Shown here one piece after another: positions 18,251 to 63,656 of a stretch of DNA of 64,000 nucleotides (position 1 is its first letter; each line of letters starts with the position of its first letter). The stretch covers positions 180,048,001-180,112,000 of the forward strand of contig CM075978.1 in assembly GCA_038087875.1 (NCBI GenBank), written 5' to 3'. The notes beneath the pieces are model-generated. The model ran no database searches and had not been told where the DNA came from. It saw only the letters and a list, made by a program, of their open reading frames with translations. Origin of the DNA: Malacoraja senta. Taxonomy: Eukaryota. A program made the translations under genes and the position numbers.

Positions 18251-18340
18251 TTTATTTTTATTTATTTATTTATCTATTTATCTATTTATTTATTTATTTA
18301 TTTATCTATTTATTTGTTTATTTATTTATTTATTTATTTG
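18251..18340. repeat. (TTTA)n microsatellite inside the inner DIRS1
   Basis: Directly visible; it interrupts the MT-like region. Confidence 0.95.
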
Positions 18341-21662: not shown

Positions 21663-21869
21663 CTGAGCGAGAAGAAAAGCGCCCTGTAAGTAAAAACGAA
21701 ACCACTTACCTTGTCCGATTTTTACTTTAAATTTGCTTTACTCACCGCTGGAGGAGCTCCTGCTCCTCCACACACGGTCATGAACGCTATGCGATCTGAT
21801 CGATAATGACGCTTGTGCGGCTGGACGGGGCTTCTTCACGTAGTCACTCACGTGACTCCGAAGTAAAAT

Positions 21870-35817: not shown

Positions 35818-36020
35818 TCAAATATTCATTGGGTCATTTTTCCTTTTACGATGTTTTTTTACTTTTGGCGTGGCATCGGTAACTTCTGCTGTTGTGATTG
35901 GGTTCCACTGTGTCATCTGTATATTCCCTTTAACTGTTTCCTCTTTCATATTTTCAGGATTTGCCATGATAGGGTGAGTGCAACGTATGCAGGTCTTCAT
36001 TTGAACCTTGCCTTTACGTG
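35818..36020 (-). CDS. Exon 5 (putative last coding exon): cytoplasmic tail
   Basis: Strong acceptor ttttctttcag| at 36021 in phase 1, matching the TM-exon donor. Encodes (A)RKGKVQMKTCIRCTHP...KVKKHRKRKNDPMNI*. Small intervening exons in the 10.8-kb intron cannot be excluded. Confidence 0.62.
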
Positions 36021-36559
36021 CTGAAAGAAAAATAACATGAAATATCAGGTGCAAAATCTTCACTGAAAATTAGAAAATGTAGAAACATTCCCAAAGAAAC
36101 TTTACCTTCACAATCTGATGCGCTACTACTACTACTAAGCAATGTTGACCCAGCAAAGCTCAGTCATAGCATCAAGATGATGTTAGGATTACTAAAATTG
36201 TCCTCGTGTCCAAAGCCTAAAGAGTGGGGTGATCGAATAAAATTCCCTGTCTTGTACTTGTTGTTTACAAGGCGGCATGTGTGATAAAACTTAGTTATAG
36301 TGGGATCAGGAACCACCTCCTTAAAAGTCTGGCTAATGTCACAGACTGTCAGCGATCATATACGTCATTGGCAAGGTCAGAATTTCCCCTAGTGAAAAGG
36401 CGCTGAATTGTACGCTATATGACTGATGGGAATGGGAATCTGGAAGAAATGCATGAAATACTATGTGGAAACAAAGAACTTAAATGGTGGTTAATATACA
36501 AAAGGACTCAAATTGCTGGTGTAGCAAGTCAAGCCGCATCCCTGTTTTGTTGGGCTAAG

Positions 36560-36910
36560 TGGGCAGAGGGCTGTTTATTCAGAGGGTGTGATGTTGGAGT
36601 GTCTGAGGGGAGTAGATAAGTTAAGACGGTTGATGTTGTGCCGACAGTTAGAAACAAAAAGCCAGCAGAGGGAGTCCAAGAGGAAGGGGAATGTTGCAAA
36701 CAAGAGAAGGGGTCATCACTGGTCAGTGCGGACACCTTTCCATAGAAAAACGCCCAGAAGTGGAGGCGAAGGTAAAAGAGCTCTACGTCATGGAGAGCCC
36801 CGGAACTCATTGAGGTGAGGGTGGAGGCGTATAAAGGTAAGGCCTTTGTTGAGGACAGACTGTTCTGGATCGGAAAGTGGGACGTCACAAGGGGAGGGTG
36901 AAAACATAAC
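36560..36910 (-). mobile_element. Penelope ORF N-terminal remnant
   Basis: ELFYLRLHFWAFFYGK...SDDPFSCLQHSPSSWTP resembles the pre-RT region of PLEs. Confidence 0.55.
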
Positions 36911-37514
36911 AAGTTTTCACTATGCTAAATTAATCAACTTTAAGTTAGTGCACTTTAACCTTTCAAAAGAACTGAAGTTCTTTGCAACCAACAAAGTATA
37001 AATTGTAGTCCCTGTAACTTTATGGGTACCCATTATACGCATGTTTCTATGAACAACAGTAACATAATAGAAGTTTACTTTATTGTCACAGGGACTGAGG
37101 TACGGTGAAAAGCTTCTGTTGCGTGCTAACCAGTCAGCGGAAAAACAAAACATGATAACAATCAAGCCATTCACAGTGTACAGATGTAAAGATAAGGGAA
37201 TAACATTTAGAGCAAGATAAAGCCAGTAAAGTCTGATCAAAGATAGTACAAGGGTCTCCAATGAGGTAGATAGTCGTTCAGGACTGCTCTCAAGCTGTGC
37301 TCGGATGATTCAAATATATAACCACAGTCAGTGATTTTAATGTGAGATAAACACTGACTGAGGATTCAGAGAGGGAATCTCAGCTCTTCTTAAAATGTTC
37401 GTAAATTTTTGTTTGGATTTTATTGAGAAATAGACGAAATCTCTATTTAAAATTTCAAATGAGATAATAAGCACTCCTTTCCATGGGATATAATTCTTTT
37501 TAATTTAAAAAAAA

Positions 37515-40500
37515 TTTTTTTTTTTTATTAGAAGTATTGTACAGTACAGTGATCTCAAACAAACATAAAATTATACATTTCTTGTACCACTTCTTATTTT
37601 AAACTTTATAAGAAAAAGGATAGAAAGAGTTAGGAAAGATAGTAAGTGAGTGATTGAAAGAGTGGTCCAGGAACACCCATAGGGACCTAAACCACAAGAA
37701 AGAGTTAAACAAAAGAGAAAAACCGCAAGAAGGAAAAAGAAAAAAAAGTAAGATAAGATAAGACAAGATAAAAGGGATGTACCGATTTCATATCTTTACT
37801 CACCCCTCATCAGGTCCTGAAACCATTTATTATCAACATTTTGTTGCACCCTATATTTGTAATAAGTCGATAAATGGAGACCAAATCTTTTGGAAATGGT
37901 CTGGTTTACCTGCTAAGAGGAATCTCATATCTTCTAGGTGTAACAGTTCTGACATATTAGAAATCCACATTTTTGTCGTTGGCGTGGGAGCGTTTTTCCA
38001 AAATGTCAGTATAAGTTTTTTTGCCGTTATTAAGCCATAATTAAGAAAGCTCTTTTGAAATGAAGTCAGCTCCAAACTGGCTTTGATTGTTCCAAAAATG
38101 ATCAGTTCTGCATTCGGTTTCAGTTTTATTTTAAATAATTTTGTGAAAATTTCAAAGATTTCATTCAAAAAATTTTGCATTTTTGTACAAAAAACAAAAG
38201 AATGTGCTATATTTGCTTCTTGGGTTAGACATTTATCACAGATAGAAGAGACATTTGGGTAAAATTTACTTATTTTAGCTTATGAATAGTATAATCTATG
38301 TAAGATTTTAAATTGAATTAGAATGTGTCTTACGTTAATCGAGCATTTATGCACATATAACAAGTGTTTATCCCAACTCTCTTTCGAGATTTTTATAGCT
38401 AGTTCTTGTTCCCAATCTCTTCTAATCCTATCAGATGATGGTATTTCTATATTTAGGATGGTATTATACAGGTATGATATTAAATTAGTTGATTCCGCTT
38501 TTATGTTCTTTGTCTCCTCTAATAGGTCTGGAGACATATTTTGATATTCTTGTGTATATTTTTTCAAATAGTCACGTATTTGAAAATATTTAAAATATTG
38601 ATTACTATTCAAGTTGTATTTAAGTTGTAGTTGGTGAAATGTTAAAAAAACTTCCATTATCATACATATCTCCAAACGTTTTAATTCCTAATCTATCCCA
38701 GTGTGTAAATGATTTATCTATCGTAGAAGGTTTAAACGAAGGATTATTCATTTTTGGTGAAAGAAGCGATAGATTTCTTAATTTTAAAGTTAATTTTATT
38801 TGTTTCCAAATTCTAATTGTACTATGGATAATTGGATTTTTACTATATATTGTATTCTTCAATTTTGATGGTGAGAGAAGGATCGCTCCTATATTAAAAG
38901 GGGACAAATCCTCTCTCTCCATTACTATCCAATCCACCTGCTGGGCCGAGTTGTCCAACAGGTGAATCATATTTTTGACATTTGCGGCCCAGTAATAATA
39001 CAAAAAATTGGGGAGTGATAATCCGCCAAATTCTTTAGGTTTGCACAAATGTCTTCTTTGAATTCTATGGGATTTATAGTCCCATATAAAATTTGTAATA
39101 TCAGCATCCACTTAAAAAAAAAATCGGTATTGACTGGAATAGATATAAAATTTGCGGTAAAAAAATCATTTTTATAGCATTTATTCGGCTTATTAGAGAC
39201 ATCGGGAGAGTTTTCCAAAATTTAATCAGTATGTTTAGTTTATTGAGTAAGGGCATATAGTTTGCATTAAATAAAGATTTATATTTTCTAGTAATTTCAA
39301 TTCCCAAATATTTGAATTTTTCTGAAACGATTTTAAAAGGGAATTTTAACAGGTGTGTTGGGTCTTGAGGTTTTATCGTCATAATTTCACTTTTATTCCA
39401 ATTTATTCTATATCCTGAAAGGATCCAAATTCCTCTATTAGATTTAATATATTTGGTATACTGATTTGTGATTTTGTAATATATAATAGTACATCATCTG
39501 CATATAATGATATTTTATTATTTGAGTATTTTGTATTATAACCATGGATGTTCGGATGTATTTTAATACTTTCCGCTAACGGTTCTATTACAAGAGCAAA
39601 TAGCAGAGGTGATAATGAACATCCCTGTCTATTTCCCCATGATAATTGAAATTTCGGGGACAACATATTATTAGTTAATATTCTGGCAGTAGGCCTGTCA
39701 TATAATAATTTTACCCAAGCGATAAAATTGTCTCCCATTTGAAATTTTTGCAATACTTTAACAAGGTAATCCCATTCCACTTGATCGAATGCTTTTTCTG
39801 CGTCCAATGAAATAATTGATAAGTCTTGTTCTTCGGTTTTATATGAGTGCATTATATTAAACAGACGTCTCAAATTATTGCATGAGTATCTCTTGGGTAT
39901 AAACCCCATTTGATCCGTATTTATTAATTTACTAACATATTTACTTAATCTTCTAGCTAATGTTTTCGCTAATATTTTTTGATCTGTATTTAACAGCGCA
40001 ATAGCTCTATAGGAACCCGGGTCTTCTAAATCTTTATCTTTTTTAGGTATAAGTGTAATCGTTGATTCCGCTAGTGTTTCTGGAAGTGTATGTTCTTTAA
40101 AAGCATATGTATACATTTTATGTAACCGTGGTGTAATTATCTCGTAGAATCTTTTATAAAATTCATTACTAAAACCATCTGGTCCTGGTGTTTTTCCATT
40201 CTTTAATGAATTTATTGTTTCTTCTATTTCCTTAGTTGAGATTTGTGCACCTAATTCCTCTTGTTCAATCAAATTAAGTTTTGGGAGATTACAATTATCC
40301 AAGAACTCTATAACTTTAGTACTATCTGCTAACGCTTTAGATGTATATAAATTTTGATAAAATTGAGCGAATCTTTTATTAATATCCTTAGGTAGTGTTA
40401 ACAATTCCCCTTTATCTGATTTAATCTTTAAAATCGTATGATCTTTTTCCCATTTTTTCAGTTGTCTGGCCAAAAGTTTGTGTGGTTTATCCCCAAATTC

Positions 40501-41800
40501 AAAATTTTCCTGTTTTGTAATTTGAAATAATCTTATAACATTTGCTGATAATATTTTATTTTATTTAAATTTCAATATTGTTATTTTATTATGTTTATCT
40601 ATAGTTGGCTCTTTAGCGTTATCTAAATCCAATTGTCTAATTCGTTCTTCTAACTGCCTTTGTTCATTCTTATTCTTTTTGTTTAGAAAAGCTTGGTATG
40701 AGATTATAGATCCTCTAATAAATGCTTTGAAAGATTCCCATAGTAAGGTTGGTGAGATCTCTGGGATATCATTAGTCTTGAAAAAAAGTTCCATCTGTTG
40801 TTTTAGATATATTTCCCCTTGTGGATCATTTAGGATTTGAGGGTTAAACCTCCAAAACGATTTATTAGTAGGCATTCCTTCTAATAAAAAAACAAAAAGT
40901 TAACAGGGAGTGATCAGAAATTGTGTACTAGTGTGGTATTTTGGGTTCAATGTATAGGAAATTAATTTTGTATCCACTAGAAAATAGTCGATACGTGAAT
41001 ACGTTTTGTGTACCATTGAATAAAACGAGTATTCCCTTCCAACAGGGTTAGCGATCCTCCAGACATCTGTTATATTTGTATTTTTTATGTATGTATTTAA
41101 AATTTCCCTGGTTTGAGATTTTGTGTTACCCCTGTTCTGTTGTGAAGATTTATCCAAGTATGGATCTAAAACACAGTTAAAGTCTCCCCCAATTATCACA
41201 TTTTGATAAATTGAACTCTGAAATTATATTCAGGATTTTATTAAAGAATTGGGGATTATCAAAATTAGGCACATAAATATTTACCAAGGTAATTGGAGTA
41301 GCATGAATCTCTCCGGTAACTATAAGGTATCTCCCTTCCTTATCTATTATGATATTCTTTGATTTAAATGGTATACCTTTGCGAATAATAATTGCTGTGC
41401 CTCTAGATTTGGAAATATATGAAGATTGGTATGTTTGGCCTATCCAATTTGCCTTCAATCTAGTCTGAGCTTGCAGTTTCAAATGAGTTTCTTGTAAAAA
41501 TATTATGTCCGAATTGAGCTTCAATTGTGCAAAAATCGTACCCCTTTTAATTGGTTCATTAGCACCCCTTATATTCCAACTGCAGATGTGATTCCTCCAA
41601 ATTTCTTTTGTTTATCGTCTTGCATTTTAAATTATTTAATACCTTTGAATCATATGGTGCAATGGATATAATTCAAGATCTTGTGCTCAAATATCTTTCC
41701 TGTCACTATGGTACATACGGAGCCATTCATATTCCACATGGTTATACATAACAGGAACACAACTCCAATAATTAAACATGAATGTGAAAGTGAAATACAA
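37515..41800 (-). mobile_element. L1-clade LINE, near-complete frameshifted ORF2 plus 3'UTR
   Basis: APE (SWNIRG, IFLQETH, NIYVPN, GGDFN, YSRIDY), RT (KTPGPDG, SLDAEKAFD, RQGCSLSPLLF, LYADD) and a C-terminal CSICDKC motif. AATAAA plus poly(A) at about 37515-37529. Confidence 0.93.
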
Positions 41801-41814
41801 CTGTAGATCAGGGA

Positions 41815-42912
41815 ATTAGAGCACATGGTATTGGGGGTAGGGTGTTGACATGGATAGAAAATTGATTGGCAGACCGGATCTCATACAAGAAACTCATTTG
41901 AAACTGCAAGCAAAGAGTAGGAGAGAGGGTTCTTTTCAGAACGGCAGGCAGGCAGTGGCGAGTGGAGTGCTTCAAGGCTCCGTGTTGGGGCCGCAACTGT
42001 TTACCATATATATTAATGATTTGGAAGAGGGAAGAGGGAAGTGTGAACTGTGAAGAGGATGTTAGGAGGTTGCAGGGTGACCTGGACAGGTTGAGTGAGT
42101 GGGCAGATGCATGGCAGATGCAGTATAATATAGATACATGTGAGGTTATCCACTTTGGCAGCAAAAACAAGGGGGCAGATTATTATCTCAATGGGGTTAG
42201 GTTAGGTAAGGGGGAGGTACAGCGAGACCTGGGTGTCCTTGTACACCGGTCACTGAAAGTTGGCGTGCAGGTACAGCAGGCAGTGAAGAAAGCTAATGGA
42301 ATGTTGGCCTTCATAACAAGAGGATTTCAGTATAGGAGTAAAGAGGTTCTTCTGCAGTTGTATAGGGCTCTGGTGAGACCACATCTGGAGCATTGTGTAC
42401 AGTTTTGGTCTCCTAATTTGAGGAAGGACATCCTTGTGATTGAGGCAGTGCAGCGTAGGTTCACGAGATTGATCCCTGGGATGGCGGGACTGTCATATGA
42501 GGAAATATTGAAAAGACTAGGCTTGTATTCACTGGAGTTTAGAAGGATGAGGGGGAATCTTATAGAAACATATAAAAGTATAAAAGGACTGAACAAACTA
42601 GATGCAGGAAAAATGTTCCCAATGTTGGGCGAGTCCAGAACCAGGGGCCACAGTCTCAGAATAAAGGGGAGGTCATTTAAGACTGAGGTGAGAAAAAACT
42701 TTTACAGAGATTTGTGAATTTATGGAATTCCCTGCCACAGAGGACAGTGGAGGCCAAATCACTGGATGGATTTAAGAGTTAGATAGAGCTCTAGGTACTA
42801 GTGGAGTCAAGGGATATGGGGAGAAGGCAGGCACGGGTTATTGATAGGGGACGATCAGCCATGATCACCATGAATGGTCAAATGGCCTCCTGCACCTATT
42901 TTCTATGTTTCT
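41815..42912 (+). mobile_element. 5'-truncated CR1 LINE
   Basis: GVLQGSVLGPQLF and RPHLEHCVQFWSP; 3'UTR ending cctattttctatgtttct. Confidence 0.9.
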
Positions 42913-43169
42913 AATGGGGCAGGGGCAGAGAGATGGTAGTAGTATAAATTCAGTTATCGCATGTGGTTAACTAGAGACTGCAGATAACAAAGCCCATAAG
43001 AATTAAAAAAAAAATCAACATTCTTGAATCTAAAACTTTTTTTCCAGCAGATTTAGCACTGTCATTGAGTCATTCAACATGGAGACAAGCCATGCAACTC
43101 AACTCGTCCATGCTGACCAAAGTTCCCATCTACACGTCCATTTTGCCTGTGTTTGCCCCCATATGGGCA

Positions 43170-44070
43170 GATAGAAACATAAAAAATAGGTGCAGGAGTA
43201 GGCCATTTGGCCCTTCGAGCCTGCACCGCTATTCAATATGATCATGGCTGATGGGGCTCATCAGCCTGGAAAGGCAGTCCATCTAGGAGAGGGAAAACTC
43301 TGATTTAAAATCTCCACTTCCTTGTGGCCATATCCAGTCATGGAAAAGGCTCCAGGAGTAAACCTCAAGAAAATCTGGAGTCGGAGCCCCTAAGGCAGTT
43401 CGTCGTTGTCTACAACCTCGCTCTGGCAGCTCCTGCGACAGCGCTGGTGCCAAACTGTAACAGCCCTGCTGTTCCTTTGGATCGATCAGCGACGTGGTGA
43501 GGGGGGACGTGCTGCATGGGCAACAGCCTGTCCTCCGTATGACATCGCCCAGGCTTGCATCTGACCAGGATGCATCACCCATGGTCAGTCATGACCGAGG
43601 GGGGCCTAAGCCCCCACATCCCTCGAACCCTTACCCATCCATTTACCTGTCCAAATATTTGTTAAATATGGTTAATATTCCTGCCTCAACCACTTCCTCT
43701 GGCTGCTTACTCCATATACCCAAACCTTTTGTGTGAGAAGGTTGTCACTGAGGTTCCTATTCAATCTAACGCCTCTCACCTTAAACCTATGCCCTCTAGG
43801 GAAAACCTTGTAAAAAAAAATGTGCATTCACTTTTTCTATTCCCCTTTTGATTTTATACACCTGTGTAAGTACACCCTAAATTGCCTATGCCTCAAGGAA
43901 TAAAGTCCTAGCCTGCTGAACCTTCAGTCTTAGCAACATTGTCATGTATTTTTCTGTAGTTGTTCCAGCAAAATGTCATCTTTCCTATAGCGAAAATACT
44001 GCAAGTGTGGTCTCAGCAAAGTCTTGTAAAACTGCAACGTAATTTCCCAACTTCTATACTCAATGCCCTT
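43170..44070 (-). mobile_element. Degenerate CR1 3' end split by an unrelated insertion of about 340 bp (43255-43590)
   Basis: The CR1 3'UTR in reverse orientation lies on both sides of the insert. The insert's family is not identified with confidence. Confidence 0.6.
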
Positions 44071-46862
44071 ACAGAGAAAGGAGAGCACGCTGAAAGCCGA
44101 TTAACTTATGTTTTTACATTTTATTGTCTGCATATTTTAATGTTTTTCTGATTAAACAAGATTTGTTCCAGATTTTATTAAATGAAAATATGCAAGAGTG
44201 GCACAAAGTTACTGGCAAACAATATGCCACTGATTATTAGGCCTTTCTATTTATTAGAATGGGCAAGAGATGTTGGCCTTTACAGTGACACCCACATCAC
44301 TGGAAATGAACAAAGAAAAAAACTGAATTTATGTCTGAGGTGTTATTTTAAAACAAAGAATGTGTAAAAAAAAATCTTTGGCTGTATGGAGGAAATGAAG
44401 CTTCCTGAAAGCAAATGTAGTGGTGGAGGTATTTCGGACAAGCAAGAGATAATGGAGAATTTCACAGGATGAAAGACAATAGATTCAATAAAAGATAAAA
44501 GGCAAGATATGTTGATTTATAAGGACAATAATGATGAAACAATCAAACAATATCCAAATTAAAGTTTAAAAAGGATAGAGACCAGCATGAGGGTGGAGGT
44601 TTAGGGGAGGAGCCAGGCTTTCAACCAGAAATTTTCATCGAAATATTCACTACCTTTTAAATATATAAAAGGTGCACCCGTGGAATAATGTCTGTCTGGT
44701 GTTCAAATGTGCAAAACCAGTGGGCTGCATTGTTTCTGATATAATCATCAGTATTAACACAGATTGGCAATATATTATTTTAATTTTGCTTAACTATTAA
44801 GGGATTAGCAGCACAGTGAAATTACAAACTGTAAAAAGCTAGCAGGGCCTCCTCAGTCACAAACACTCACAGCAACGATTGTGATAAAGCGATGGTTTAG
44901 TCTTGAGGAAATAACGAACAGCAGAGGAAACACTTGATTGATCACTCGTCGTTTTCTCTGTTTTTAATCCTTGCACATGAGTTCAATGGTAGAAACAATT
45001 ATAAAGTGGAGCCATGTTTAATATGCAAGTAGGCCAGGACACTATAAATGTACTTCTTGTATATTGCTCTAACTGAACAATAAAATGTGATAATTAGTCA
45101 ATTAATGTCAGAGGGTTTCAATTAAATGGTATAAAGATGTTGTGTTTGTTTGGAAGGCTGTACTTTTCTGTACAGGCATGAATTCTCTGCAAGATTCCAC
45201 ATTCTGATGAATAAGATAAACCAGAAATAATTCATAACTTGATCACTTTCATTCATGAAGCCAGAAAAGAACAAGACAATTAATTTGGGAAATATGAAAA
45301 GGATTGCAGCATTGAGGTGCAAATTGTTTTTGGTGCTCAGCAGCTCATCGGCCAACCGGAAATTTTTACATCTCCATTTTAAAACACAAAGCATTTTCTT
45401 TTGCTGCACAAAACAGAAGTTCCGTCACGCACTTAAGAAATAATAATAAATCAAAGCTAACTTTTCTTCAATTTAATACTCCAAACTTGCCGTGAATATG
45501 AAAGTAGCCTTAATTGTATTAAGAAACATGAGCTATGGCCCAAGATTACTCAAAATTTTGATAAGTTTTTATGTCAGAAGATTGGAGGTGGGAAGGAACA
45601 TAATGAACTCGAAAAACTGGAGTAATTTTTACGAATCACTTTCTTTTATTAGCTGATACCTAGCGTCATGTACCCCTGATATTCAATGCTATTACCATCT
45701 TTAAATGCCCCACCATCAACATCCTGAAGGTCACCTTTGAGCATAAATTCAACTGAACCATAGATAAACAATGTGCCTACAAAGCAGGCCAGATGGTGGA
45801 TATCCTGTGGTAACTTGCTTGCACTCCTAACATCCGAGTTCTTTTTAGCACTTACAAAGCACAAGTTAGGAGTGCGATGGAATACTCTTCACTTGTCTGG
45901 CAATTGCAGCTGCCACAATTACCAACAATCCTTCTTGTTGAACAACAATTTGAAGTCGTAAAGACAAAATATTCCGTGGCTGTGGACTCTCCATCCCAAA
46001 CTTGGCTTGTAGCACGTGTGTTGGCTGACTCTTGAAAGTGAGTCCATGGCTGATAGTGAGTGAACCAACACAACCAATAAAATCACATTACCTCACTCTC
46101 GCCAATTCACCTGTGGCAGATACATCTGTTCATGATAGCATTGGTAGAAGTGTACACAGCGTGAACTTTATGGAGACAGATCCTACTATCATTACTTACA
46201 TGCCGGCATTCAACACTAGTTGAATGGGGAATGCAGAAGGACATGCCAAGAGCAGTACTAGGCAAAATCAAAAATGATGATATCTTAGCTTTGTGAAGCT
46301 GCAATGTTGGTCTACAATTGTGTTAAACAACAAATGCAGCATGTAATTAATGGAGCTGAACAGTCCCACACAAATCAATCAGATGAAAGTTCTGCAAATC
46401 CCACAAAATCTAGTTGTAAGTGAAGCTGCATCTCAATAATGACATCCCTAACACATGAATGCTAGACATGGCCAAAGCTTTCAAGCTATGTTCAATCAAA
46501 AATGGCAAACTGATGGCTTTGACTTCCTCCTAAAATCCCCTTCATCACAAAAACCAATCTTCATCATTTTAGTTCTCTCCACATAACAGCAATAAATATC
46601 CGAGAGCAGTAAATACACTGAATACTTTGCTTTAAAATGCACTCTGTCTAAGCTGAAAACTCAATGTCTATTGTGGAAGTGTCCAATTTGCAATACTTAT
46701 TCCTATTACAATGTACAGCTCAGAAAAAAAACATAACAATTTTTTTATCTGAAGTCCGGCTATTACAGAGTTATGAATGATTAATTTACAATAACCTTTT
46801 TGCATGTTATAATTAGTGAATCAATGCAACACTAAAATCATTGAAAAGAGATTGTCCCTTAC

Positions 46863-46967
46863 CTTTGCAGAGTTTATAACTGGCTATTGCTACAATAATC
46901 AGAAGCAGTGGAAACATTACTCCACAAAGAGAAATCCACCAAGGTAAAGTAGTTATTGGACTGACGT
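46863..46967 (-). CDS. Exon 4: stalk and transmembrane segment
   Basis: Acceptor ctttccag| at 46968 and donor AAAG|gtaagg at 46862, phase 1-1. Encodes VSPITTLPWWISLCGVMFPLLLIIVAIASYKLCK, a hydrophobic helix followed by basic residues, with no charged residue in the TM core. Confidence 0.88.
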
Positions 46968-47499
46968 CTGGAAAGCAGATATAAAACAAAAATAAAATCA
47001 CGTACTCTCAAGATAAATGATGATTCAGGAGGTTACGACATTCTGAGGGCTCTGCATAAAACTATATTATAAAGTAAATCTGCTTGTGCAAAAACAGCAC
47101 TAATGTTCAAACCAATATTCAAACCAACAGAAACAAATAGTGTGATTAAGCTCATTTAAAACATAATACCTCATCAACCTAACGTATAAAGAGTTTTGAG
47201 AATCTCTGTCCAATTACTGGTTGGTGGGGTTCAAAACCTTTGAGTTAACTAATGGAGTTATTTTAAACTGTTATAATGTGAAAAATACAGAACAAATTCT
47301 TCACACAAAATTTAAGCAATTAAATATTTGACCAATTAATACATTTTATGAATGTTAGAACACAGAATGGAATAGCACTGAATAGGCCGTTGCCCCATGA
47401 TGTCTGTGCTGAGCTTGATACCAAATTAAACTAAAACCTTCTGCCTGCATATGATCCATATCCCTCCAGTCGAAACTCTGTCTTAGTCTTCTGGTTTAG

Positions 47500-48830
47500 C
47501 TACCATGAGATAATAAGGTGCCATCATTGTTCTGAGATGCAAGGGAATCTGGGTGCATGAACTGCAAACATCTAGTATTCAGGTGCAGCAAGTAATTCAC
47601 AAAGCTGTCAGAACATTTTATTTTATTATATTTTATTGCTGGGGGAATTGAATACAAGAGTGGGAAGACCTAGATTGATTTACATCGGACATTGATGAAC
47701 CACATCTGGAGAATCTAGTCCAGTAATGGCTTCCTTGTTTAAGTAAAGACTAATATGACAGAAGTAGTTCAGAGAACTTTTACTGGACTAATGCGTGCCT
47801 TACAGGAAAAGGTTTTGTGTCTGCTGCGATTCAACAGAGTGAGAAGGGTCCTGATTGACAAATGTAAAATCATGAGAAGTCTTGACAGGGTGGAAATGGA
47901 AAGGATATTTCCTCACAGAATGATTAGTTGTGACTGTTTAAAATAAAGGATCACACATTGAAGGCAGACAAGTGGAATTTTTCATTCTCTCCACTGGCTG
48001 AAAGCTTTGGCAAACTCTTCCTTTAAGGGGAATGGAAACAGAGTTAATATTTTTAAAGCAGAACGAGGCAAATACTAATTCACTAATGGGCTGAAATGTT
48101 TACGGGTTGCAAGCATGGATTTGTTAAGGGCATATCATATTTAAATAATTTGAGATAACAGATAGAGTTAATGAAAGTAATGCAGTTCTATGTGATGAAG
48201 CACAATCCTTAAAAGGAGACAATAAAAAAATTATGGTTTGCAAAGTAAAAGATAACAAGAGCAATGTAATGAATGGATTTCTGACTTAAATTGTTAATAG
48301 TGGTGCTTCTAGGTGTCAGTTTAGGATCATTGTTTTTTTTATAATCTATTTTAATAACCTAGAATTAGGACGTCAAGCCAAAATTTCTAAATTTGCAGAT
48401 GGCATAAAACTTGGTGTATTGTGATTAACAAAGGAGATGGGGATATATTGCAGCCAGATATAAACCAGCTGGTGATAGATGAAGTTTAATGTGGAGAAAT
48501 ATGCATGATGCAATTTGCTGTGAAGAATGAGGAGAGGCAAGGGAGAGAAAAGGATACTTTTCAAAATGGGGTGCAGGAGAAGGGGGATGTGTGCATAAAT
48601 CATTAAACATGATTGGGGAAGTTAAGTAAGTGGATAATAAGGCAAACACAATACTGTGCCTTATCAGTAAAGACAGAGTATGAAAGCAGGAATGTATGCT
48701 GAATCTGTATAAAATTCTTGTTTGACAGCTGGAAATATGATACTAATTTCTAGTGACCACATTATCGGAAGGATGTGAAGATGTTAAACAAAATTGGTTC
48801 CCAGCGCTATAATCATGACAGAAGTTTAGA
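47500..48830 (+). mobile_element. Old degenerate CR1-like fragments
   Basis: Decayed VQRTFT/QGSVLG/KF..D.KL-type segments at about 47500-47960 and 48260-48830. Confidence 0.55.
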
Positions 48831-48844
48831 ATGAATTGGACTGT

Positions 48845-49168
48845 TTTGATTGATTGTTTGATTGACTGAAAGTACAGCATAAAAACTGGCCATTCAGCCC
48901 ACCAAGTCCATGCCAACAGTCGATCACCCATTCACACCAGCTCTGCATTATCCCACTTTCGCATCCACTCTCTATATATTAGGGGCAATTTACAGAAGCC
49001 AATTAACCGAAAAACCTGGACGTATTTAGGATGTGACTGAAAAATGGAGCACCCAGAAGAAACCCATACAATCACAGGGAGAACATTCAAACTACACATG
49101 GACCTGAGGTCAGGTTCAAAACTGAGATTCTGGTGCTGTGAGACAGCAACTTTACAAGCTGTGCCATC
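48845..49168 (-). mobile_element. tRNA-derived V-SINE (HE1-like)
   Basis: Homologous to 34964-35265, with a (tgat)n tail. Confidence 0.75.
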
Positions 49169-50014
49169 CTTTCTTTGGAGAAGAGAAGGCCGAGGGGAGA
49201 TTTGATGGAAATATATAAATCGATGAAGGCTAGAAAATGTATCGAGAGAGTGAAACCAAAGACCAAAGGGCTGTCATAGATAATGGGGAAAGAGAATGCA
49301 CTTCCTATGGATGTAATGGAAGCAGGTTCTGCTATATCATCAAAGAGATGAATTGTATTAACCTATGCTGCAGAAAAAAAATGCAATGCTGGAGAGACTA
49401 GTGATTTGTTCTGGTAAAAAATCAGCACACACATGATGGGCTAAAAGGGCTCCTTGTGTGATGTAATTATTCTATGATTCTGTGGCATATTGATCACATG
49501 TATAGAATGAGTAAGTAACTGAGACTTGAAAATAATCATAAATCCATGGATGCTGGAAATCTGAAGTAAAAATACTAGTAGCACACTGCAGAACAGGCAG
49601 CATCTATGGAAAGAGAAAGAGAAGTAACCTTTCAGGTTGGAGATCATTCTTAACTCTATGTATCTTTCCACAAATGCTGGCTGAGCTGCAGAGTTTTTCC
49701 AATACTTTCTGTTTTTAACTTAAGATATCTCATCAGTTAAATAATTGTGCAAAAACACATCAGCAAAGGATTACACCCAGGGCAATATTGAATAAAATTG
49801 GACCTTAAGAAGTAGTGTAAAGTCATGTCACAGAGCTTAGCAGCTGCAGCTGGTGTGTACTGCTATTAATCTAAAACACTCCATGCAAACCCAGTTTCTG
49901 AAAATTCAGATTTTAACTCATCGCCTGCTAGGTATTATTACAACAAAAAATTCAACCCGACACAGTGTAATCATATACAAATTAAATTCTTTGTCAAAAG
50001 AGGGATGTTTCTAC

Positions 50015-50305
50015 CTGCAAGGTTGACAGTATAAGTGACCGAAGCTGGAGCTTGGAGCGTGGAGTGAGACACTTTACATGTGTAGATAGTTCCTTCCTGC
50101 GGTGGCTGTGGGTCGTGCAAATAGCTGGAGGCTTCAGTTAGACTCTCTGCATTAAGCTGATGGTTTGTTTTTACTCCATTCATAATTGTTTGACCATCTC
50201 TATACCAAGACAAGCTGTAGTCTGCAGGATAGAACCCAGAGGTTTTGCACAGCAGAGAACCATCCGCATCTTGTGATTTCAAAATCTTCATTGGTTCTGG
50301 GGAAG
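50015..50305 (-). CDS. Exon 3: C1-set Ig domain
   Basis: Acceptor ttttctacag| at 50306 and donor GCAG|gtaga at 50014, phase 1-1, 291 nt. Contains LLCKTSGFYPADYSLSW and YTCKVSH, canonical C1-set signatures. Confidence 0.93.
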
Positions 50306-52186
50306 CTGTAGAAAATGTTAAAGATAACATATGTTCTGATTTCAATATTGCAAACAAGATGTGAACCGATATATTTGTCTGGTGTACATCGGAATATGTT
50401 AGTATATTCCCTTTTCTAATATTTCATTCCTCCATTATTAAAAGGGACTATTCGCTGGCATGTCTGATCTATAGAACATTTTGGTATAATAATCTGACAC
50501 CATCTTGTACAAAAATATTATAATGGGGACTTCACGGCAAGAGGGCCTGAAAACACCGGACTGGCTGCAAGGCCACAAATAGGCCTCGACCTTGGGTGGT
50601 CACAGAGGAAGAGGACTAAACATTCTGGTGCCTTTCCCCAGTGGAAAATTTTGATTCTGTTGTGGGGGGTCGTTTGTGTTGAACTCTATAATGTGTTGTG
50701 TCAATTTTTCTTTTTAAATCTTTTTCTATGGATGTACGGAAACTTATTATTTATTTTATGTAAAGCTCTTTGGTTTCAACGCGGGTTGATTTAAAACGTG
50801 CTATATAAATAAAACTTACTTACTTACTTATTGGATAAATATGTTCTGTTCTGCACTGTAAAGATCTATGTGGATATAAAATTAAAAACTGACCCAATCA
50901 TGATGAATCCAAATTAAGTATGAGCTTGCCTACTTATATTTTACGCCTACATTAACGAAAAGGAGACGACCTGGTGCATTTGCTGGAAATGGGAAAGGAA
51001 GAAGCTATCCTGCACACTTAATGATTTTGTTCAACAAAAGTGTAGGTACATACTCAAGTGAATCAGCCTGAACTGAATAAAGTACTGTGCTAGGTTGGCA
51101 CATAATGAGATGCCCTGGCCTAAACCCAAATATAGGTTGTGTAGTCTGAATTCCAATTATGCCTGTCTTGCACTTAAATATAATGTGTTCCTTTTGTGGA
51201 AATTAATCCATTGTTAAAGGAGGCAGCTACCATTCTCTCATCAAATAGCTGAGACATAAAAACAGCTTTTTTCCCCCACGAGTAATAGCTCTACTCAATA
51301 ACCAAAAATCTGTAGCCTCCTTTGGCTGTGGTATTTTATTTAATTCACATGTTTAATCGATAAGGTTTTATTGTTAATGTTGACTGTTTTATGTGTCATT
51401 CTTAATTGTCAGTGTATGTCATGTTGTCACTTGCGCGCGGAGTACCAAGGCAAATTCCTTGCATGTGAACTTACTTCGCCAATAAACTTATTCACTCATT
51501 CATCAAAAAATTCCATTGTCAGGTAATATTCATGTCTCTATTAAAACAAAGCTTGTCAGAGTAAAAGCTTGTATTTGGCAACAGAACAGCAGCATTACAA
51601 TAATAAGCTAGTTTCTACAAAATGTAACAACATTTTTTAAATGAATTTTGATGCTTGTACAGTGCATAAGCTTTATGCAGTTCACCGTCGAAGGCATCTA
51701 CACAAGGCACTTCTTCAAGAAGACAGCATCTATCATCGATGATTTCCACCAAATGGCTCATGCTCTCTTTTCTCTGCTACTGTCAGACAGGAGGTACAGA
51801 ACACTAATGTGTAGGAAAGAACTGCAGATGGTGGTTTAAATTGAAGATAGACACAAAATGCTGGAGTATGTGAGGAACAGGCAGCATCTCTGGAGATAAG
51901 GAATGGGTGATGTTTTGGGACGAGACCCTTCTTGTACAGAACACTAAATTCCCACACCACCAGGTTCAGGAACAGCTATTTTCCTACACCATCAAGTCTT
52001 GAAATGGCCTTCATGATCTTAATCCTTCCTCAGCAGCGAAACGCGACAGTCCACCTCTTGCACAACAATGGACTTGATTTTATATCTGTGTAAGAAAGAA
52101 CTGCAGATGCTGGTAAAATCGAAGGTAGACACAAAATGCTGGAGTAACTCAGCGGGTGAGGCAGCATCTATGCAGAGAAGGAATGT

Positions 52187-52216
52187 GTGACATTTCGGGT
52201 CGAGACCCTTCTTCAG
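52187..52216 (-). ncRNA. Minimal hammerhead ribozyme motif
   Basis: Minus strand reads CTGAAGAagggtctcgacccGAAAtGTCac. Confidence 0.55.
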
Positions 52217-53119
52217 AATCTGTTTGGCACAAATTTATTGTATTACACATTGTTTTTCTTTGCACTGGCTTTCATAATTTGTTTGCTGTCTTAGTCTGCC
52301 TGCCTTTGATGCTGCTGTAAGCAAGCTGTTCATTGTACTTGTAACTTACTGTATTTGGGCATATGTCAATAAACTCTACTCGCCAATATAATTTAGCATC
52401 ATTATCATACAAAGCTGTATTCTACAAAGTGTAACAAAATAAAAGAATGGATTTTGATTGTCTTAATTCAAGGTAAATAATGGTAAGACCAACATGGCCT
52501 ACTTTACTTCTAGTCACATAAATTACCGATAAATTAAGAAACATTTCAGAATATTAAAAATACATAATTTGCATTGTATAATTAAATAATTGATAATGTG
52601 GGAAAATGGCTGCCAGGACCATTCATATGAAATCGGTCTTTACCTATAGGAATGATACATTTTGTTCCAAATATTCACACTGTTGCCACTTGTTCTCACC
52701 CCTTTCCACTAACTCCATGCCTCTGCCCCACCAGACCCCATTCTTAAATAGTAAGATGGTCTGCTTAAATCATGCATTTTAGTGGTGCAATTTTTCTGCT
52801 GCATCTCTGTTAAAAATGCTAATGAGCATCTACAATTAAAGAAAATCAATACAATTATAGATACTTAATCTAAAGCAGAGAACATTAAATATTATTAAAG
52901 GATAGGCAAATGCTTTGACAGAGAATGCAACAGAAATAATGCATGCATTCTCAATACTATGAAACATCTTTAATAAAATAATATCCTCATGTTGCATTGG
53001 GAGGATAGTCTGTCAGTTGACTTCAAAGTCAGTCAATTTGGCTTTTATAAAACAAAAAAGGTAAGAAAATAGGTTGTATGGAAGCCGATGAGTCCCTTGC
53101 AATTATAATAAGGGCTATT

Positions 53120-54471
53120 CAGAATCTAAAATTAAGAAACCTATCTCTCTTAATACCAATAGTCAATAACCCATCGTTTAAACCTTCAATCATAGATAAA
53201 TCATTTATACAATGGGAAAGAATGGGAATCAAAACGCTCGAAGATCTGTATGAATTAGAAAAATTACTATCATTCCAACAACTACAACTGAAATATAATT
53301 TGAAAAATAATCAATATTTTAAATATCTACAAATCTGTGACTATTTGAAAACACACACAAAAGATTATTATAATATGCCTTCCGACTTACTAGATGAAGC
53401 AATGAAGACAAAGGCGGAATCAGTTAATTTAATATCATACTTATATAATATCATCTTAAATATAGAAATACCCACAACAGATGGAATTAGAAGAGATTGG
53501 GAACAAGATCTAGGTATAAAAATTTCAAAAGAGAGTTGGGATAATCATTTATTACAGGTGCATAAATGCTCGATCAACGTACGACATACGCTTATCCAAT
53601 TTAAAACATTACATAGATTATATTATTCAAAAACCAAACTAAATAAAATCTTTCCTAACGTCTCACCAATCTGTGATAAATGTATATGTCAAGAAGCTAC
53701 CATAGCACATTCTTTTGTTTTTTGTACAAAAATCCAAAAATTCTGGTTTGAAATATTTGATATTTTTTCAAAATTAATCAAAATAAAACTGGTACCAAAA
53801 CCAGAATGGATTATTTTTGGAATATCGGAAGGTATTCCTGAATTAAACGTGTATCAGAAGAATTTACTCAATTATGGGCTAATAATGGGAAAAAAGCTTA
53901 TACTTAAATTCTGGAAAAATGCGCCCACACCAACAATAAAAATGTGGACATCAAATATGTTGGAAACATTACATCTGGAAGAGATGAGATTCCTCCTAGT
54001 AGGCAAAGTAGACCAATTTCAAAAGACGTGGTCTACGTTTTTGGACCTATTACAAGCATGAGGTGCAATTGTAATTTAGAAAAACAAATAAATAAATAAA
54101 AGGTATCTGGACCTGGTAATGGGAGGTAAAATAAAAACAGACTTGGTTGGTAGTTCCTTCTCTATGAAGTATGGTATAAGAGTTATAATAGAGCGATTGT
54201 TCCTTCTTTCTTTCTCTTTCTTTTCTAGGGTCTATTTTCTAACTTTACTTCCTTCTCTAACTTCTTTTCTAAGGGGCTTTCTTTTCCCAACACTCTTTTG
54301 CACTTCACAACCTTTGCGCACTTTCTTCACTTTTCTTACTTCTTTCTTTTTCTTTCTTAAAGTTTAAAAAAGTGAAGCGGTACAAAAAATGTATTAATAT
54401 ATACGTGTTGTACATTACTGTAATCTACCGTACTTCTATTAAAAAAATTATTTAAAAAAAAAATAATAATA
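53120..54471 (+). mobile_element. 5'-truncated L1 (ORF2 C-terminus, 3'UTR, A-rich tail) with 15-bp TSD
   Basis: ataataagggctatt at 53105-53119 and 54472-54486. The protein is homologous to the C-terminus of the L1 at 37.8-38.8 kb. Confidence 0.92.
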
Positions 54472-56531
54472 ATAATAAGGGCTATTTAACTTCAGACCAG
54501 TGTCAGTACTTGTAAACAGCACAAATTAACCAGGATTTTCTGGAAACATAAGTTACAGAACATAGATTACATACTTTATATATCCAGAAAGGAGCCTATT
54601 CCCTAAAGGAGCCTAGTCAGACAACGATTAAAATGTAGATGTCCAGAAATTACGTTTTTGTTTTGTCAATCGTTGGTTGGCACATTCACTCGTCCAATTT
54701 TTCCTCTGGAGACACAAGGTTTGAAATAGAGGCAGGGGCAGTTGGTGGACGGGAAGGAAGGGAAATGGGTACCTTTCAACGTTTAACATTTAACTATTAA
54801 AATTTCCAATCGGAATGGGATTAATGTTCCAGAACCGAATAACTAAATGTGTAGATCTGGGACTGATCAAATAAAAATAAAGGTATGGAACTTGAGCGGG
54901 CGAGTAGCCTTCATCATCCTGCCCCTTCGGGGCACCCGCGACCCCTGAAATAACGGCGCAACTCTAGCACATATTAACATATTTTTGTAACATTGTTTAA
55001 GGAGGAATTGGTCCATTTGTAATCGTAGAACTCGCAATTTGGCTTTGAAATTCTTTCGACGGTCCCTAGTTTTTAAAATTTATGTAAAAACATAACGCTG
55101 AATGAGTCTGGGCTTGATTAATAATTTAACTTCGTGGGACACTACCAAACGAAAGATGTCAATGAACTGTGCAAATTTTACAGTCCAAACTGCCCCACTT
55201 CAGACACAATCAGTTAAAGAGAAATGCATCTCTGATGCAACCGGCTGGTGGAGCAGGGACATTTAAAGTTAAAAGATTGTTTATACTATCCGAGCGACTG
55301 ACTGTTCAGTTTTGGAAATAAGCACATTAAATGCAGAGCTCCAGATACATTCACTGAGGTTAGCACCAATTAAGTTTCCCCAATATATTTCTGCCGAATA
55401 TATTTCTGCCGAATTGATAGCACCGTCGGACGGCACATGTAGTGCAATTATCCCATTGCCACCCGACTTTCCAGGAATTATTGTTTTATTCCCCGGGCGG
55501 AAGTCCATTCTGAGGGGAAAATTAACGCGCCTGTGCGTAGATATAATTCTACCCCAGTATGCTTGAGCATGAATCAATACGTTACTCTCCCGTGTGAAGT
55601 ATATTAGTATATTACACAGACCACTAGTAATGTAGCAATATACATCGATAACTCAGATCGCCATTTTCCATCATTTCGGCAGCTCTTCCAATGCATCCTG
55701 GAAATGGAGTTCCCTTCCTGTGGAATGCTGCAACTAATTGGGAGCCGAATTGTTTATTAAGTAGCGGGAATTGTTTATTAAGTAGCTGTTTACAGAAAGC
55801 GTGGCAATTCCCCTTGGATGGAACACCTGAAATTGTTTGTAAAACAAATACAACGGCAATCCAGATTTTTAAAAAGCAGATATGTCTGCTTCTTCGCTGC
55901 CCAGCTGAACTAAAACCCCATACTGGTACTCTTTAGGGGTAAACGATAACTAATAATTAAATTCAAATATTTCGTCTTAATGAACTACATTCAAGGTTGT
56001 GGGAAGTTAGCAATTTCAATGGTTAGAAGTAGACGGATACTGGGGAAATGTTAATGCATTTCACACGATGTGTTGCAGCTATAGAGCACAGCGTATTGCG
56101 ACATATACCTTAAAAGTACAATTTTGTTCAGCAAATGATTTCGAAATAACTGTTCAGCCGATGCCCGCGGTTGCCACACGGAATTATAAAGGGACGCCGA
56201 TGGATGATACAAAATGTGCATTCGGCGCGTTCCTTTACGAATATCCCCCTCCTTCCATTATTATACATGTCATTGTCTCCCGTGGTTCACAATGCCCGGT
56301 ACCAATATTCCCTTGTACCCCCTGTCACTGCTGTAAGGTTTTGCCCGGCAGCGACCATTATTTACGCGTAGTGTATGAACCGTAAATGAACACTTTACGG
56401 AAATATGTTTTAGCTACTTTTTATTCCCTTCATTCCTGTCCAGTCTCCTGTCGCACTGCAGCGGATCAACATTGCCCCGAGCCAGGTTTATAAACAAAAG
56501 TGGCAGCATGTCGCTGAGAACGATCGCTCAC

Positions 56532-56843
56532 CTTTTACTCGAAGGGTTACACCTGTTCCATTTCCAGTGTATTCACCCTCCACTCTGCAGTAATAGATTC
56601 CGGCATCTCCGAATCTCACGTTCCGAATCTCAAGCGAAGCGCTCGCTCTAGATTCCACCTTGAACATTTTCCTGTGATCTTCTCCCTCTTTGAAAAATTC
56701 CCGTTCTCCAATTTTCCACCAATACATCCTAATGTTATTTTTATCTCTAAATAGCCCGAACGAGCATTGCAAACTCGCGATCTGCCCTACCAATGCATCG
56801 ATTTTATCCGGCATTTGATGCACCTCCGTAACCTCGGCGAATG
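56532..56843 (-). CDS. Exon 2: V-set Ig domain with germline-joined J-like segment (NKp30/NCR3-like)
   Basis: Acceptor tttttgcag| at 56844 and donor AAAG|gtgag at 56531, phase 1-1, 312 nt. Contains B-strand LQCSF, C-strand MYWW, and ASLEIRNVRFGDAGIYYCRVE followed by GNGTGVTLRV (G-x-G-T G-strand motif). Confidence 0.93.
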
Positions 56844-57095
56844 CTGCAAAAATAAACGGAAAACAGTGTGTGTATATTTACGAAAGGCTGAGGACAACAA
56901 CAAACCTTCTAGTCTTTCAATTGATTTTAACACATCCATGGAAATAGCGACTTGCTTTAATGTACAAACACCACAGGAACAGACAGATACCTTCCAAAGA
57001 CCAGACACAATGAATTAAAAAGAGCGACAAAACAAATGATAATTAGTTTGCTTAGTGAACTCGCCGCTACATGTGCAAGTGTTTATGAAGAATAC

Positions 57096-57150
57096 CTGTG
57101 CAAATAACGGCTAGAATGAGGAAGGGGTTAAATTCCTTTTTTCCATACAT
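57096..57150 (-). CDS. Exon 1 (signal peptide) of VJ-C1 Ig-superfamily receptor
   Basis: ATG at 57150-57148 gives MYGKKEFNPFLILAVICT followed by a phase-1 donor (ACAG|gtatt). It splices in frame to the V exon to give ...LILAVICTAFA|EV, a plausible signal peptide and cleavage site. Confidence 0.75.
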
Positions 57151-57750
57151 ACTGAGTACCGACTTCGCAATTGAGGAGCCACGAGAGACCGCGGAGTCGA
57201 ACAACAGAAAGTTGCTGAGCCACGCAGCTGCGTTGGTTTGGGGATGGTGGGTGGGAATAACGGTATGTAGAGGGACTTTTTTTTTTGGCGGGGTATATTG
57301 TGCAAACGAAACTAAATGTCAGACTTGCAGCTTTGCGGTTTCAGTACCGTCAAACGTCAGTTGAGATCTGCGAAGAACATGCTCGCTGCTGGAAATGGAA
57401 ATTGAGGCTAATTCAAAGAATTAGAAAACACATTGAAGGAGAGTTTTTATCACAAGATGTGTGTGGCGGGTGTGGGGTTGACAGGATTGTTAGGGGTGAA
57501 GGCAGGGAGCTGTGTGGCTCAGCAACTTTCTGTTGTTCGGTTCCATGATCTGCAGATTCCTGTTCCTGCGCAGAATAAATATTTTTAACTTCACGGGAAG
57601 CCAAATGTACAAGAGGCTCTACATTCACCCTCAGCAGATAACACAGCGTGCAGTGCTTGTGCGTATCCCTTGCGAGATTCTGCAGGCGATGCGATTGCTA
57701 CATTGAGCGGAAATGTTCCCCACAATAGGGATATTTTAGAGGCAACTGAA
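57151..57750 (-). promoter_or_regulatory. Putative 5'UTR/promoter of the VJ-C1 gene within a CpG-rich region
   Basis: Immediately upstream of the leader ATG. Repeat-free, with visibly more CpG than the AT-rich flanks (the CpG enrichment spans about 54.9-57.7 kb). Contains a 32-bp inverted repeat. Confidence 0.5.
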
Positions 57751-62178: not shown

Positions 62179-62340
62179 TCACTCATAATACACAAAGGAA
62201 AAGTCCCAGAAACTACAGCCCTCATTATTCTTGTTAAACTGATTGATGCTCTTCTGGTTAACATGTTTCACAAATTTCAATGTTTCTTTATCTCGGTAGA
62301 TCAATGCCAATGCGTTGTCTTCTGGACAAAGAGTAAGTAA
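62179..62340 (-). CDS. ogfod1: OGFOD1 last coding exon
   Basis: Acceptor tatttcag|. Encodes LLTLCPEDNALALIYRDKETLKFVKHVN...FWDFSFVYYE*, ending in the conserved OGFOD1 terminus. Confidence 0.95.
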   Translation of the reverse strand, partial: LLTLCPEDNALALIYRDKETLKFVKHVNQKSINQFNKNNEGCSFWDFSFVYYE

Positions 62341-63656
62341 CTGAAATACAACATAAATAATTAAAAATGAATTTTGTTATAGAAAAGTAACACCTGATTT
62401 ATTCTCCATCACTCCACGATTCCCAATGTTTTTCTTATGAAAAAGTTGGGGGGTGCATGAACAAACTATAGGATCCAGCTGAGATACTTGCTGGTCAATG
62501 CAGGGAGGCTTCCCATATGATTCAAAGTTAGAGAACATCGCAGCCCCAAAATGGGTCATTCAGCCCCCCCCCCAATTCTTTGTTTGCCATCTGCATCATT
62601 CCTAATGGCCTACATTAGGTGCATATCCTTATTTTGCTTATTTCAACATCTCGCTAAATGGCTCTCAAATATAATTACAATCACCTATGGTCATAAATTT
62701 AAATAATCAGCATTCTGTAAAAAAACCTTTGACTAAAATCCCATTTAAAAATGCCTTAAGGCCATCTTAAATTTATGTCCACATGAGTTTGATACTTCCC
62801 ACCATGGGAAAATAATTATTGCTACCTATGCCCATAAACTTTATATAGCGTTAGCAGGTCAGTTATCAGGCTCTTTTTCTTCAGAGAAAATAAAAATAGC
62901 CTATCTAATCACTAATCTCCAATAACTAAACTACTTTAATCCAGGCAACATTTGCACTCTCTCCAGCATAACCATATCCTTCCTGTAGTGTGGTGACCAG
63001 TACGATCCAAGTAGGGTTTTGTAAAATTGCAACAAAAGCATTCTAACTTTTATATTTTATGGAAGATAGACATAAAATGCTGGAGGTCAGGCAGCATCTC
63101 TGGAGAAAAGGAACAGGTGACGTTTTAGGTTGAAACCCTTCTTCTTTATATCCACTGATTTATAAAGACAAACATGCCTTGTGCACAACGCTTACTATCT
63201 GCATTTACACTCTCTGGAAATTATGGGCTTAAAGCACAAGGTCCCTCTGTTCATCAACATCGCTTAGCACCCAAACATTTATTGTCCTGCATCTATCTGA
63301 ACAAATATACATCATCTTGCACTTGTCAAAATTAAATTCCATCTGTAAACTTACTAATCATACCCAAGTTCCCATCAAAACTATAACATACATAAAAAAT
63401 AACGAGAGTCCCACACTGATCCTCGTGATGTATCAGTATTCTGCCTAATTCGTTGCAGAATGCAATGTCTGTTGGAACTTGCATGCAAAAGGCAACATGA
63501 CTTGGTTACTGGGATTCCTAAATAAGATTTCATGGTTCAATGGTCCTTTATTGTCACAAGTACCAAGGTACAGCACGTAAGCATTTATTAAGCCTATATT
63601 AATTCCAAAGTTTTAAATCTCCTTAAGAAATTAATTTGAATTAATTCAGTTCATAC

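Follow-up and report, generated by a model that had tools for sequence, protein, structure and literature searches.

The stretch of DNA analyzed here, hereafter the window, comprises 64,000 nucleotides of Malacoraja senta (GenBank assembly GCA_038087875.1, contig CM075978.1, positions 180,048,001 to 180,112,000). Its minus strand carries an intact gene that, judged from its sequence, encodes a type I membrane glycoprotein in which a variable (V) domain already joined in the germline to its J-like strand (VJ) is followed by a single C1-set constant domain. The gene is the batoid copy of a single-copy orthogroup and the conserved, tyrosine-free member of a large family of V-C1 receptors of cartilaginous fish. 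The explanation that we consider probable as a whole is that of a conserved VJ-C1 receptor with a conserved partner, made in two forms and provided with a cysteine and polybasic tail.

Non-rearranging VJ-C1 genes are candidate relatives of the gene that was split by the RAG transposon, giving rise to antibodies and T-cell receptors (TCR). To our knowledge few of them have been characterized, namely SIRP, UrIg and UrIg2. The gene described here has the minimal layout of an antigen-receptor chain, is kept as a single copy across the lineages of cartilaginous fish and appears to lie outside the major histocompatibility complex (MHC). Its tail matches none of the classic templates of immune receptors. 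Study of the gene could reveal how signalling works in a germline V-C1 protein that lacks the immunoreceptor tyrosine-based activation (ITAM) or inhibition (ITIM) motifs. A large family that annotators now label in six contradictory ways could, in addition, gain a name and a reference member. We regard it as a useful lead and not as a surprise, because the evidence comes from sequence only and the gene was already in public sets.

A germline-joined VJ-C1 gene

Five exons, delimited by open stretches and splice sites, extend from position 57150 to 35818 (Table 1) and together give a protein of 321 amino acids (aa) with leader, VJ, C1, transmembrane (TM) segment and tail. Each junction has the AG acceptor and GT donor in phase 1. 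The gene is real, intact and correctly delimited. The beginning of exon 2 encodes the last three to four residues of the leader, and the exon continues uninterrupted through ...DAGIYYCRVEGEYTGNGTGVTLRVK and ...GIYYCRVEGEYTGNGTGVTLRVK, with the V and J parts in one exon. A scan of the whole window for recombination signal sequences (RSS; heptamer, spacer of 12 or 23 and nonamer) gave none near the gene, and the single weak chance match, at 9653, falls in a repeat. There is no charged residue in the TM segment LPWWISLCGVMFPLLLIIVAIAS and no tyrosine in the 66 residues of the tail, and therefore the ITIM, ITAM and switch (ITSM) motifs are absent from it. No paralogous exon was detected elsewhere in the window when four of the exons were compared with it by tblastn.

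These results agree with a first-pass annotation of the window made from the sequence alone. The five exons with canonical phase 1 splices and the type I protein of about 321 aa (leader, V, C1, TM, tail) were found where it had placed them, and the V exon does hold its J-like GNGT strand in one contiguous piece with no RSS at the V/J position. Its statement that the protein fits neither the classic activating nor the classic inhibitory template, having no TM charge and no ITIM, is likewise borne out by the uncharged TM and the tyrosine-free tail.

Table 1 Exons and motifs of the V-C1 gene and the flanking marker, in window positions
Feature	Position	Strand	Description
Exon 1, leader	57096..57150	-	ATG and the greater part of the signal peptide (18 codons + 1 nt); leader divided between two exons, like that of Ig/TCR V genes
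Exon 2, VJ	56532..56843	-	Leader end and complete germline-joined VJ domain; Pfam V-set E 8.7e-11
Exon 3, C1	50015..50305	-	C1-set constant domain; Pfam C1-set E 7.4e-12
Exon 4, stalk/TM	46863..46967	-	Short stalk, uncharged TM helix LPWWISLCGVMFPLLLIIVAIAS, juxtamembrane Cys
Exon 5, tail	35818..36020	-	66-residue cytoplasmic tail and TGA stop (35818-35820)
GIYYCRV, F strand, exon 2	56581-56601	-	
GNGT, J-like G strand sequon, exon 2	56554-56565	-	Sole N-glycosylation sequon of the protein
YTCKVSH, C1 signature, exon 3	50064-50084	-	
CIRC (CxRC motif), exon 5	35980-35991	-	
Polybasic KVKKHRKRK, exon 5	35839-35865	-	
OGFOD1 last coding exon, flanking marker	62179..62343	-	Pfam Ofd1_CTDD 1.3e-8; outside the V-C1 gene

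Read-through of the donor of the V exon (56491-56531, minus strand) would meet a stop after 14 further codons and give a V-only product. Such a product exists in the RefSeq set of the sawfish as a 138-aa "NCR3-like isoform X2" (P0002).

Orthologues and paralogues in cartilaginous fish

The V exon was searched against 1.84 billion representative proteins, and cluster look-ups and further searches followed. Single exons and orthologue identifiers were used as database queries, and the domains of the exons were scored with Pfam. The relatives that the V-exon search retrieved at full length measure 318-327 aa and come from many species. Together these searches define a single-copy orthogroup in at least 17 species. 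These include rays (Pristis, Hypanus, Hemitrygon, Mobula and Narcine), sharks (Heptranchias, Carcharodon, Heterodontus, Stegostoma, Hemiscyllium, two Chiloscyllium, Mustelus, two Scyliorhinus and Pristiophorus) and a chimaera (Callorhinchus). In a tree of V plus C1 the window protein branched as sister to the remaining batoid orthologues (96/87), a placement that would suit a skate. The approximately unbiased (AU) test did not reject a single orthogroup (p 0.31). All the full-length orthologues retrieved begin the TM with PWWIxxC and have cysteines next to the membrane. Some 12 residues further, inside the tail, all of them carry C-x-R-C without variation, and close to the C-terminus they have a K-K-H-basic run. 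The GNGT sequon is invariant in the orthogroup, and CxRC is confined to it among all retrieved proteins of up to 600 aa. The automatic RefSeq names of these proteins conflict with each other (NCR3 ligand 1-like, SIRP-alpha-like, Ig lambda-1-like, tapasin-related, butyrophilin-like 10 and CD276 homolog). The gene is already predicted in public gene sets but uncharacterized and misnamed, and it is distinct from SIRP, NCR3, UrIg and B7.

The orthologue of the sawfish Pristis pectinata (XP_051884092) is 60% identical to the window protein along its whole length. Its exons of 55, 312, 291, 111 and 206 nt have the same phases as in the window, and their concatenation gives the RefSeq protein exactly. 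The two loci are collinear throughout, at ca. 70% nucleotide identity by blastn and tblastx, in their introns and flanks too. The last exon of OGFOD1 is the upstream neighbour of the V-C1 gene, on its strand, in the sawfish as well as in the window, where 5 kb separate the two. The ratio of nonsynonymous to synonymous substitution (dN/dS) against Pristis was 0.69 (V 0.74, C1 0.71, tail 0.54) with an intact open reading frame (ORF), and dS was 0.40, near the divergence of the introns. The protein is therefore fast-evolving yet kept intact. This ratio and a change from Pro to Gly at one near-invariant site are what could be expected of a decaying or never-expressed model, or of a chance assembly of ORFs. 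Against this stand the five open exons with canonical splice sites, the retention of all invariant Cys, Trp and motif residues, the same exon plan in Pristis and a conservation that reaches the chimaera, and we consider such a decay or artefact extremely improbable.

The promoter region (57151-57520, minus strand) is about 75-80% identical to that of the sawfish, and both share the elements CTGAAACCGCAA and TTTAGTTTCGTTTG, the latter similar to an interferon regulatory factor or interferon-stimulated response element (IRF/ISRE). No TATA box was found in the promoter and no Ig-type octamer in the 1.25 kb upstream of the gene. The OGFOD1 exon ends in FWDFSFVYYE and a stop, and its conserved 3' untranslated region reaches to about 61067.

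An isoform that skips exactly the TM exon is predicted by RefSeq in five species (Chiloscyllium, Hemiscyllium, Heterodontus, Heptranchias and Callorhinchus). The TM exon of the window has 105 nt and is in phase 1 at both ends, so its skipping keeps the frame and would give a soluble protein. Shark orthologues (P0004, P0157-P0160) end in a Cys one residue from the C-terminus (…KCP, …ICA, …MCA), which is not the case in rays or the chimaera. In a TM-skipped soluble isoform this residue would resemble the cysteine of a secretory tailpiece.

Beyond the orthogroup, the scores per domain fell into three levels. Orthologues gave 83-140 bits for V and 40-125 for C1, chondrichthyan paralogues 44-77 and 36-73, and everything else retrieved at most 26 and 24. 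All the named members of the V-C1 family that were retrieved are chondrichthyan. The paralogues are V-C1 receptors of two kinds, some with ITIM/ITSM in the tail (LxYAAL, TEYAxI) and others short-tailed with a charged TM, and in each species checked they share a chromosome-sized record with the orthologue. In Mobula, the paralogues P0114/P0186 and P0187/P0188 are V-only, NKp30-shaped proteins with ITIM tails that are annotated as isoforms of V-C1 genes. As they seemingly lack C1, one gene of the family may make both shapes. Another paralogue of 347 aa (P0046) has the TM start PWWIYVC and a juxtamembrane CKFC motif as in the orthogroup, followed by a tail with tyrosine, a mixture that hints at exon shuffling between family members.

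Relationship to NKp30, SIRP, B7 and antigen-receptor chains

The V domain was called NKp30-like in the first-pass annotation. Human NKp30 was indeed the best single-domain full-length match of the window V in PDB (27 bits, E 3e-5), and Xenopus NCR3 was one of few proteins from outside the chondrichthyans to reach the top 150 of the V-exon search. Xenopus NCR3 carries GHGNGT and is alike by motif in the GNGT sequon of the G strand and in the YYCRVE F strand, and so is human NKp30. With these features of its germline VJ domain, the gene could belong to the NKp30/NCR3 family, its C1 domain having been retained or acquired. However, with the V of a shark orthologue as query NKp30 fell outside the top 60 PDB matches, below nanobodies, VH domains and an amphioxus VJ-C2 protein. 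It was also outside the top 60 with the orthologue V profile, a comparison swamped by multi-domain proteins that could not rank NKp30. Alignment of the V profile with hhalign was practically equidistant for Xenopus NCR3 (68.9), SIRP V (69.5) and Ig-kappa V (66.0), shark NCR3 not being among the proteins compared. Alignment-based searches aimed at the NCR3 of the nurse shark returned only RefSeq and UniProt models, with no entry of that name from this species.

The location of the genes also separates them. In the white shark a run of NCR3 genes is found beside AIF1/PRRC2A on the MHC chromosome, chr19, whose last listed gene ends at 115.6 Mb, giving a chromosome of ca. 116 Mb, and the MHC of the sawfish is on chr34 (PMC10751288, supplement). 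The orthologue of the window gene is found in a record of 193.5 Mb in the white shark and of 54 Mb in the sawfish, where it adjoins OGFOD1. NKp30 has only a V domain, an Arg in the TM that serves to pair with CD3zeta or FcRgamma and a place in the MHC class III region beside AIF1, whereas the window gene has a C1 exon after V, an uncharged TM without Arg, OGFOD1 as neighbour and a different tail. Because of the equidistance of the profiles, the drop-out of NKp30 and the non-MHC location, we conclude that the gene is not an orthologue of NCR3, and membership of that family seems to us quite improbable. The resemblance, read from the sequences, is at the level of motifs only (GNGT sequon and YYCRVE), so that from the earlier description the motifs stand and the family assignment does not.

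Another candidate is the SIRP family, also formed by non-rearranging type I receptors with VJ and C1-set domains. The gene could be the cartilaginous-fish counterpart of this family, reduced to one C1 domain. Many of the RefSeq names are "SIRP-alpha-like", the first non-chondrichthyan match of the orthologue profile was a mammalian SIRP-like protein (E 2e-24), and the C1 profile scored slightly higher with SIRP domain 2 than with the Ig-kappa constant domain (61.6 vs 52.9). The wider family of sharks and rays includes ITIM-bearing and charged-TM forms, in parallel to the inhibitory alpha and activating beta types of SIRP. Furthermore, two SIRPs nested inside the chondrichthyan family in the V plus C1 tree. 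They did so on a very long branch (2.47), though, and their placement outside the whole family was not rejected by the AU test (p 0.31). The window V gave at most 12.6 bits with SIRP V in phmmer, against 22-27 with NKp30, and its profile is no nearer to SIRP than to NCR3 or Ig-kappa. SIRP proteins have two C1 domains and the window gene and all its orthologues one; the window gene has neither the ITIM tail of SIRP alpha nor the Lys in the TM by which SIRP beta pairs with DAP12. A SIRP counterpart is on balance unlikely. Neither domain grouped confidently with an already described family in the trees or in the hhalign comparisons, an outcome that leaves the earlier reading of the gene in place.

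B7-H6, the other B7 proteins and the butyrophilins are alike in their V-C-TM layout and are the source of several of the RefSeq names. B7 V domains are not known to have the J-like GxG bulge. The window V is of the VJ type (GNGTG), its C domain scores as C1-set (45.9 bits) far above the CD80-like C2-set_2 (8.8e-5, 22.9 bits) and there is no B30.2 domain, and on the J-like strand and these scores membership of the B7 family was rejected. A related possibility, argued by analogy with B7-H6 as ligand of NKp30, is that the gene encodes no receptor but a B7-like ligand or self-marker, which the V-C1 paralogues nearby, activating as well as inhibitory and expanding fast, would recognize. It has no signalling motif or charged TM, is strictly single-copy and conserved while the paralogues multiply on the same chromosome, and on a single scaffold of Callorhinchus the gene numbers of the orthologue and of a V receptor with an ITIM follow one another. 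NCR3LG1-like, CD276 and BTNL10 are among the RefSeq names. The VJ type of the V domain with its GxG bulge and the C1-set character of the C domain do not fit such a ligand, nor does a 66-residue tail with residues invariant over ca. 400 My, unlike typical B7 tails. We therefore hold the ligand hypothesis to be doubtful.

The AlphaFold model of the Pristis orthologue, built on an alignment of 36 sequences of the family, had V and C1 domains mostly with predicted local distance difference test (pLDDT) values >90, with the TM helix spanning 229-254 and the tail disordered. Its best PDB matches by Foldseek were Ig kappa light chains of Fab fragments (E ca. 1e-16, 20-24% identity) with both domains aligned. 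The template-modelling scores were low, which may reflect a different angle between the domains. On this model the ectodomain is predicted to fold as a V-C1 unit similar to an Ig light chain. The top PDB matches of the C1 exon included Ig CH3 and CL and the C domains of UrIg2. Neighbours in the ESM Atlas were generic V-C clusters of the Ig superfamily (kappa-like, SIRP, CD80, BTN, OX-2). The gene shares with Ig light and TCR chains the V-C1 ectodomain, the split leader, the J-like G strand and the C1 signature YxCxVxH. It differs from them in having V and J in one exon without RSS, its own TM and a 66-residue tail. A rearranging antigen receptor was discarded as an identity for the gene, given the contiguous VJ exon with no heptamer or nonamer near it.

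Other non-rearranging VJ receptors reportedly proposed as relics of antigen receptors are the PRARP of Fu and colleagues (2019), which are reported to be V-C2-TM proteins (V-TM in birds) with ITIM. UrIg and UrIg2 of cartilaginous fish are also alike in having a split leader, a single-exon VJ and, after it, C1 domains. The C domains number three in UrIg, a protein known in secreted form only, and 9-11 in UrIg2, and the genes show linkage to the MHC or the Ig/TCR complex (PMC12227049). The window gene has one C1 instead of at least three, OGFOD1 as neighbour and a different tail, and it was not assigned to either of them.

The proposal of a little-characterized elasmobranch VJ-C1 receptor is supported, and none of the accessible papers describes the gene or its family. 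The search for orthologues among other chondrichthyans that had been suggested with it produced those of the 17 or more species listed above, and the gene is less hidden than was implied, being predicted by RefSeq in many species.

Candidate function and other features of the window

Conservation within the V domain was highest in the CDR1-like (complementarity-determining region 1) and FG/J segments (0.73-0.78) and lower in A-B and C''-D (0.60-0.62). This pattern is opposite to that of a diversifying binding site. The V domain of the conserved VJ-C1 receptor that we propose would bind a conserved, probably host-encoded partner by its CDR1/FG face, because this face is the best-conserved part of V in a protein that otherwise evolves fast. 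The receptor would be produced in two forms, one anchored in the membrane and another made soluble by skipping the symmetrical TM exon. Signalling or anchoring might proceed through the juxtamembrane Cys, the invariant CxRC and the polybasic C-terminus, a route suggested because there is no ITIM/ITAM and no charged TM. Palmitoylation, an association of the zinc-clasp type and lipid binding are candidates for it.

A far-reaching version of this proposal is that the orthogroup is a two-domain receptor-chain relic older than RAG, maintained since before the split of sharks and chimaeras in membrane and secreted forms comparable to B-cell receptor and antibody, that would recruit a kinase by a zinc clasp in the style of CD4/Lck, in place of ITAM adaptors, and would resemble the ancestor of the V-C1 paralogues and perhaps of the SIRPs. 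We give it little credence. The zinc-clasp tails of CD4 and CD8 use CxC. In KTCIRCTHP only CxRC is invariant and the His is not conserved, so that a comparison of this segment with CD4 is no more than a lead.

Several points weigh against the receptor that we favour. The gene model of Malacoraja senta is a prediction supported by sequence comparison. The soluble isoform is predicted by RefSeq in other species, and the functions of CxRC and of the polybasic end are pure inference; the orthogroup tail has CxRC (a CxxC), not the CxC of CD4 and CD8. A dN/dS of ca. 0.7 is also compatible with relaxed constraint, and residue 48 of the window protein, in the CDR1-like loop (about 56756-56758), is Gly (SFGLF), against Pro (SFPLF) in nearly all orthologues. 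The position outside the MHC is inferred from the sizes of the records, rather than read off a map of the chromosomes in this genome. We found nothing specific in the accessible literature on a V-C1 or SIRP-like family of cartilaginous fish, and a prior description may exist.

The rest of the window contains several repeats. Intron 4 holds a remnant of the long interspersed nuclear element (LINE) type (37854-41611, minus strand) in the orientation of the gene, with pieces of endonuclease-like and reverse transcriptase ORFs broken by stops and frameshifts; the segment 39406-40560 matches Pfam RVT_1 (1.5e-31). A DIRS-like retroelement is found at 17266-21737 (minus strand), with a reverse transcriptase at 19317-19928, gag-like ORFs upstream and a tyrosine-recombinase ORF at 17266-18177 that has Phage_integrase and SAM-like domains. 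Finally, between about 6000 and 9450 (plus strand) two blocks of tandem repeats appear as long repetitive ORFs in several frames (...FKCSFLPLQAGCKATE..., ...NHHQPFAVLQFKP...) and are probably satellites.

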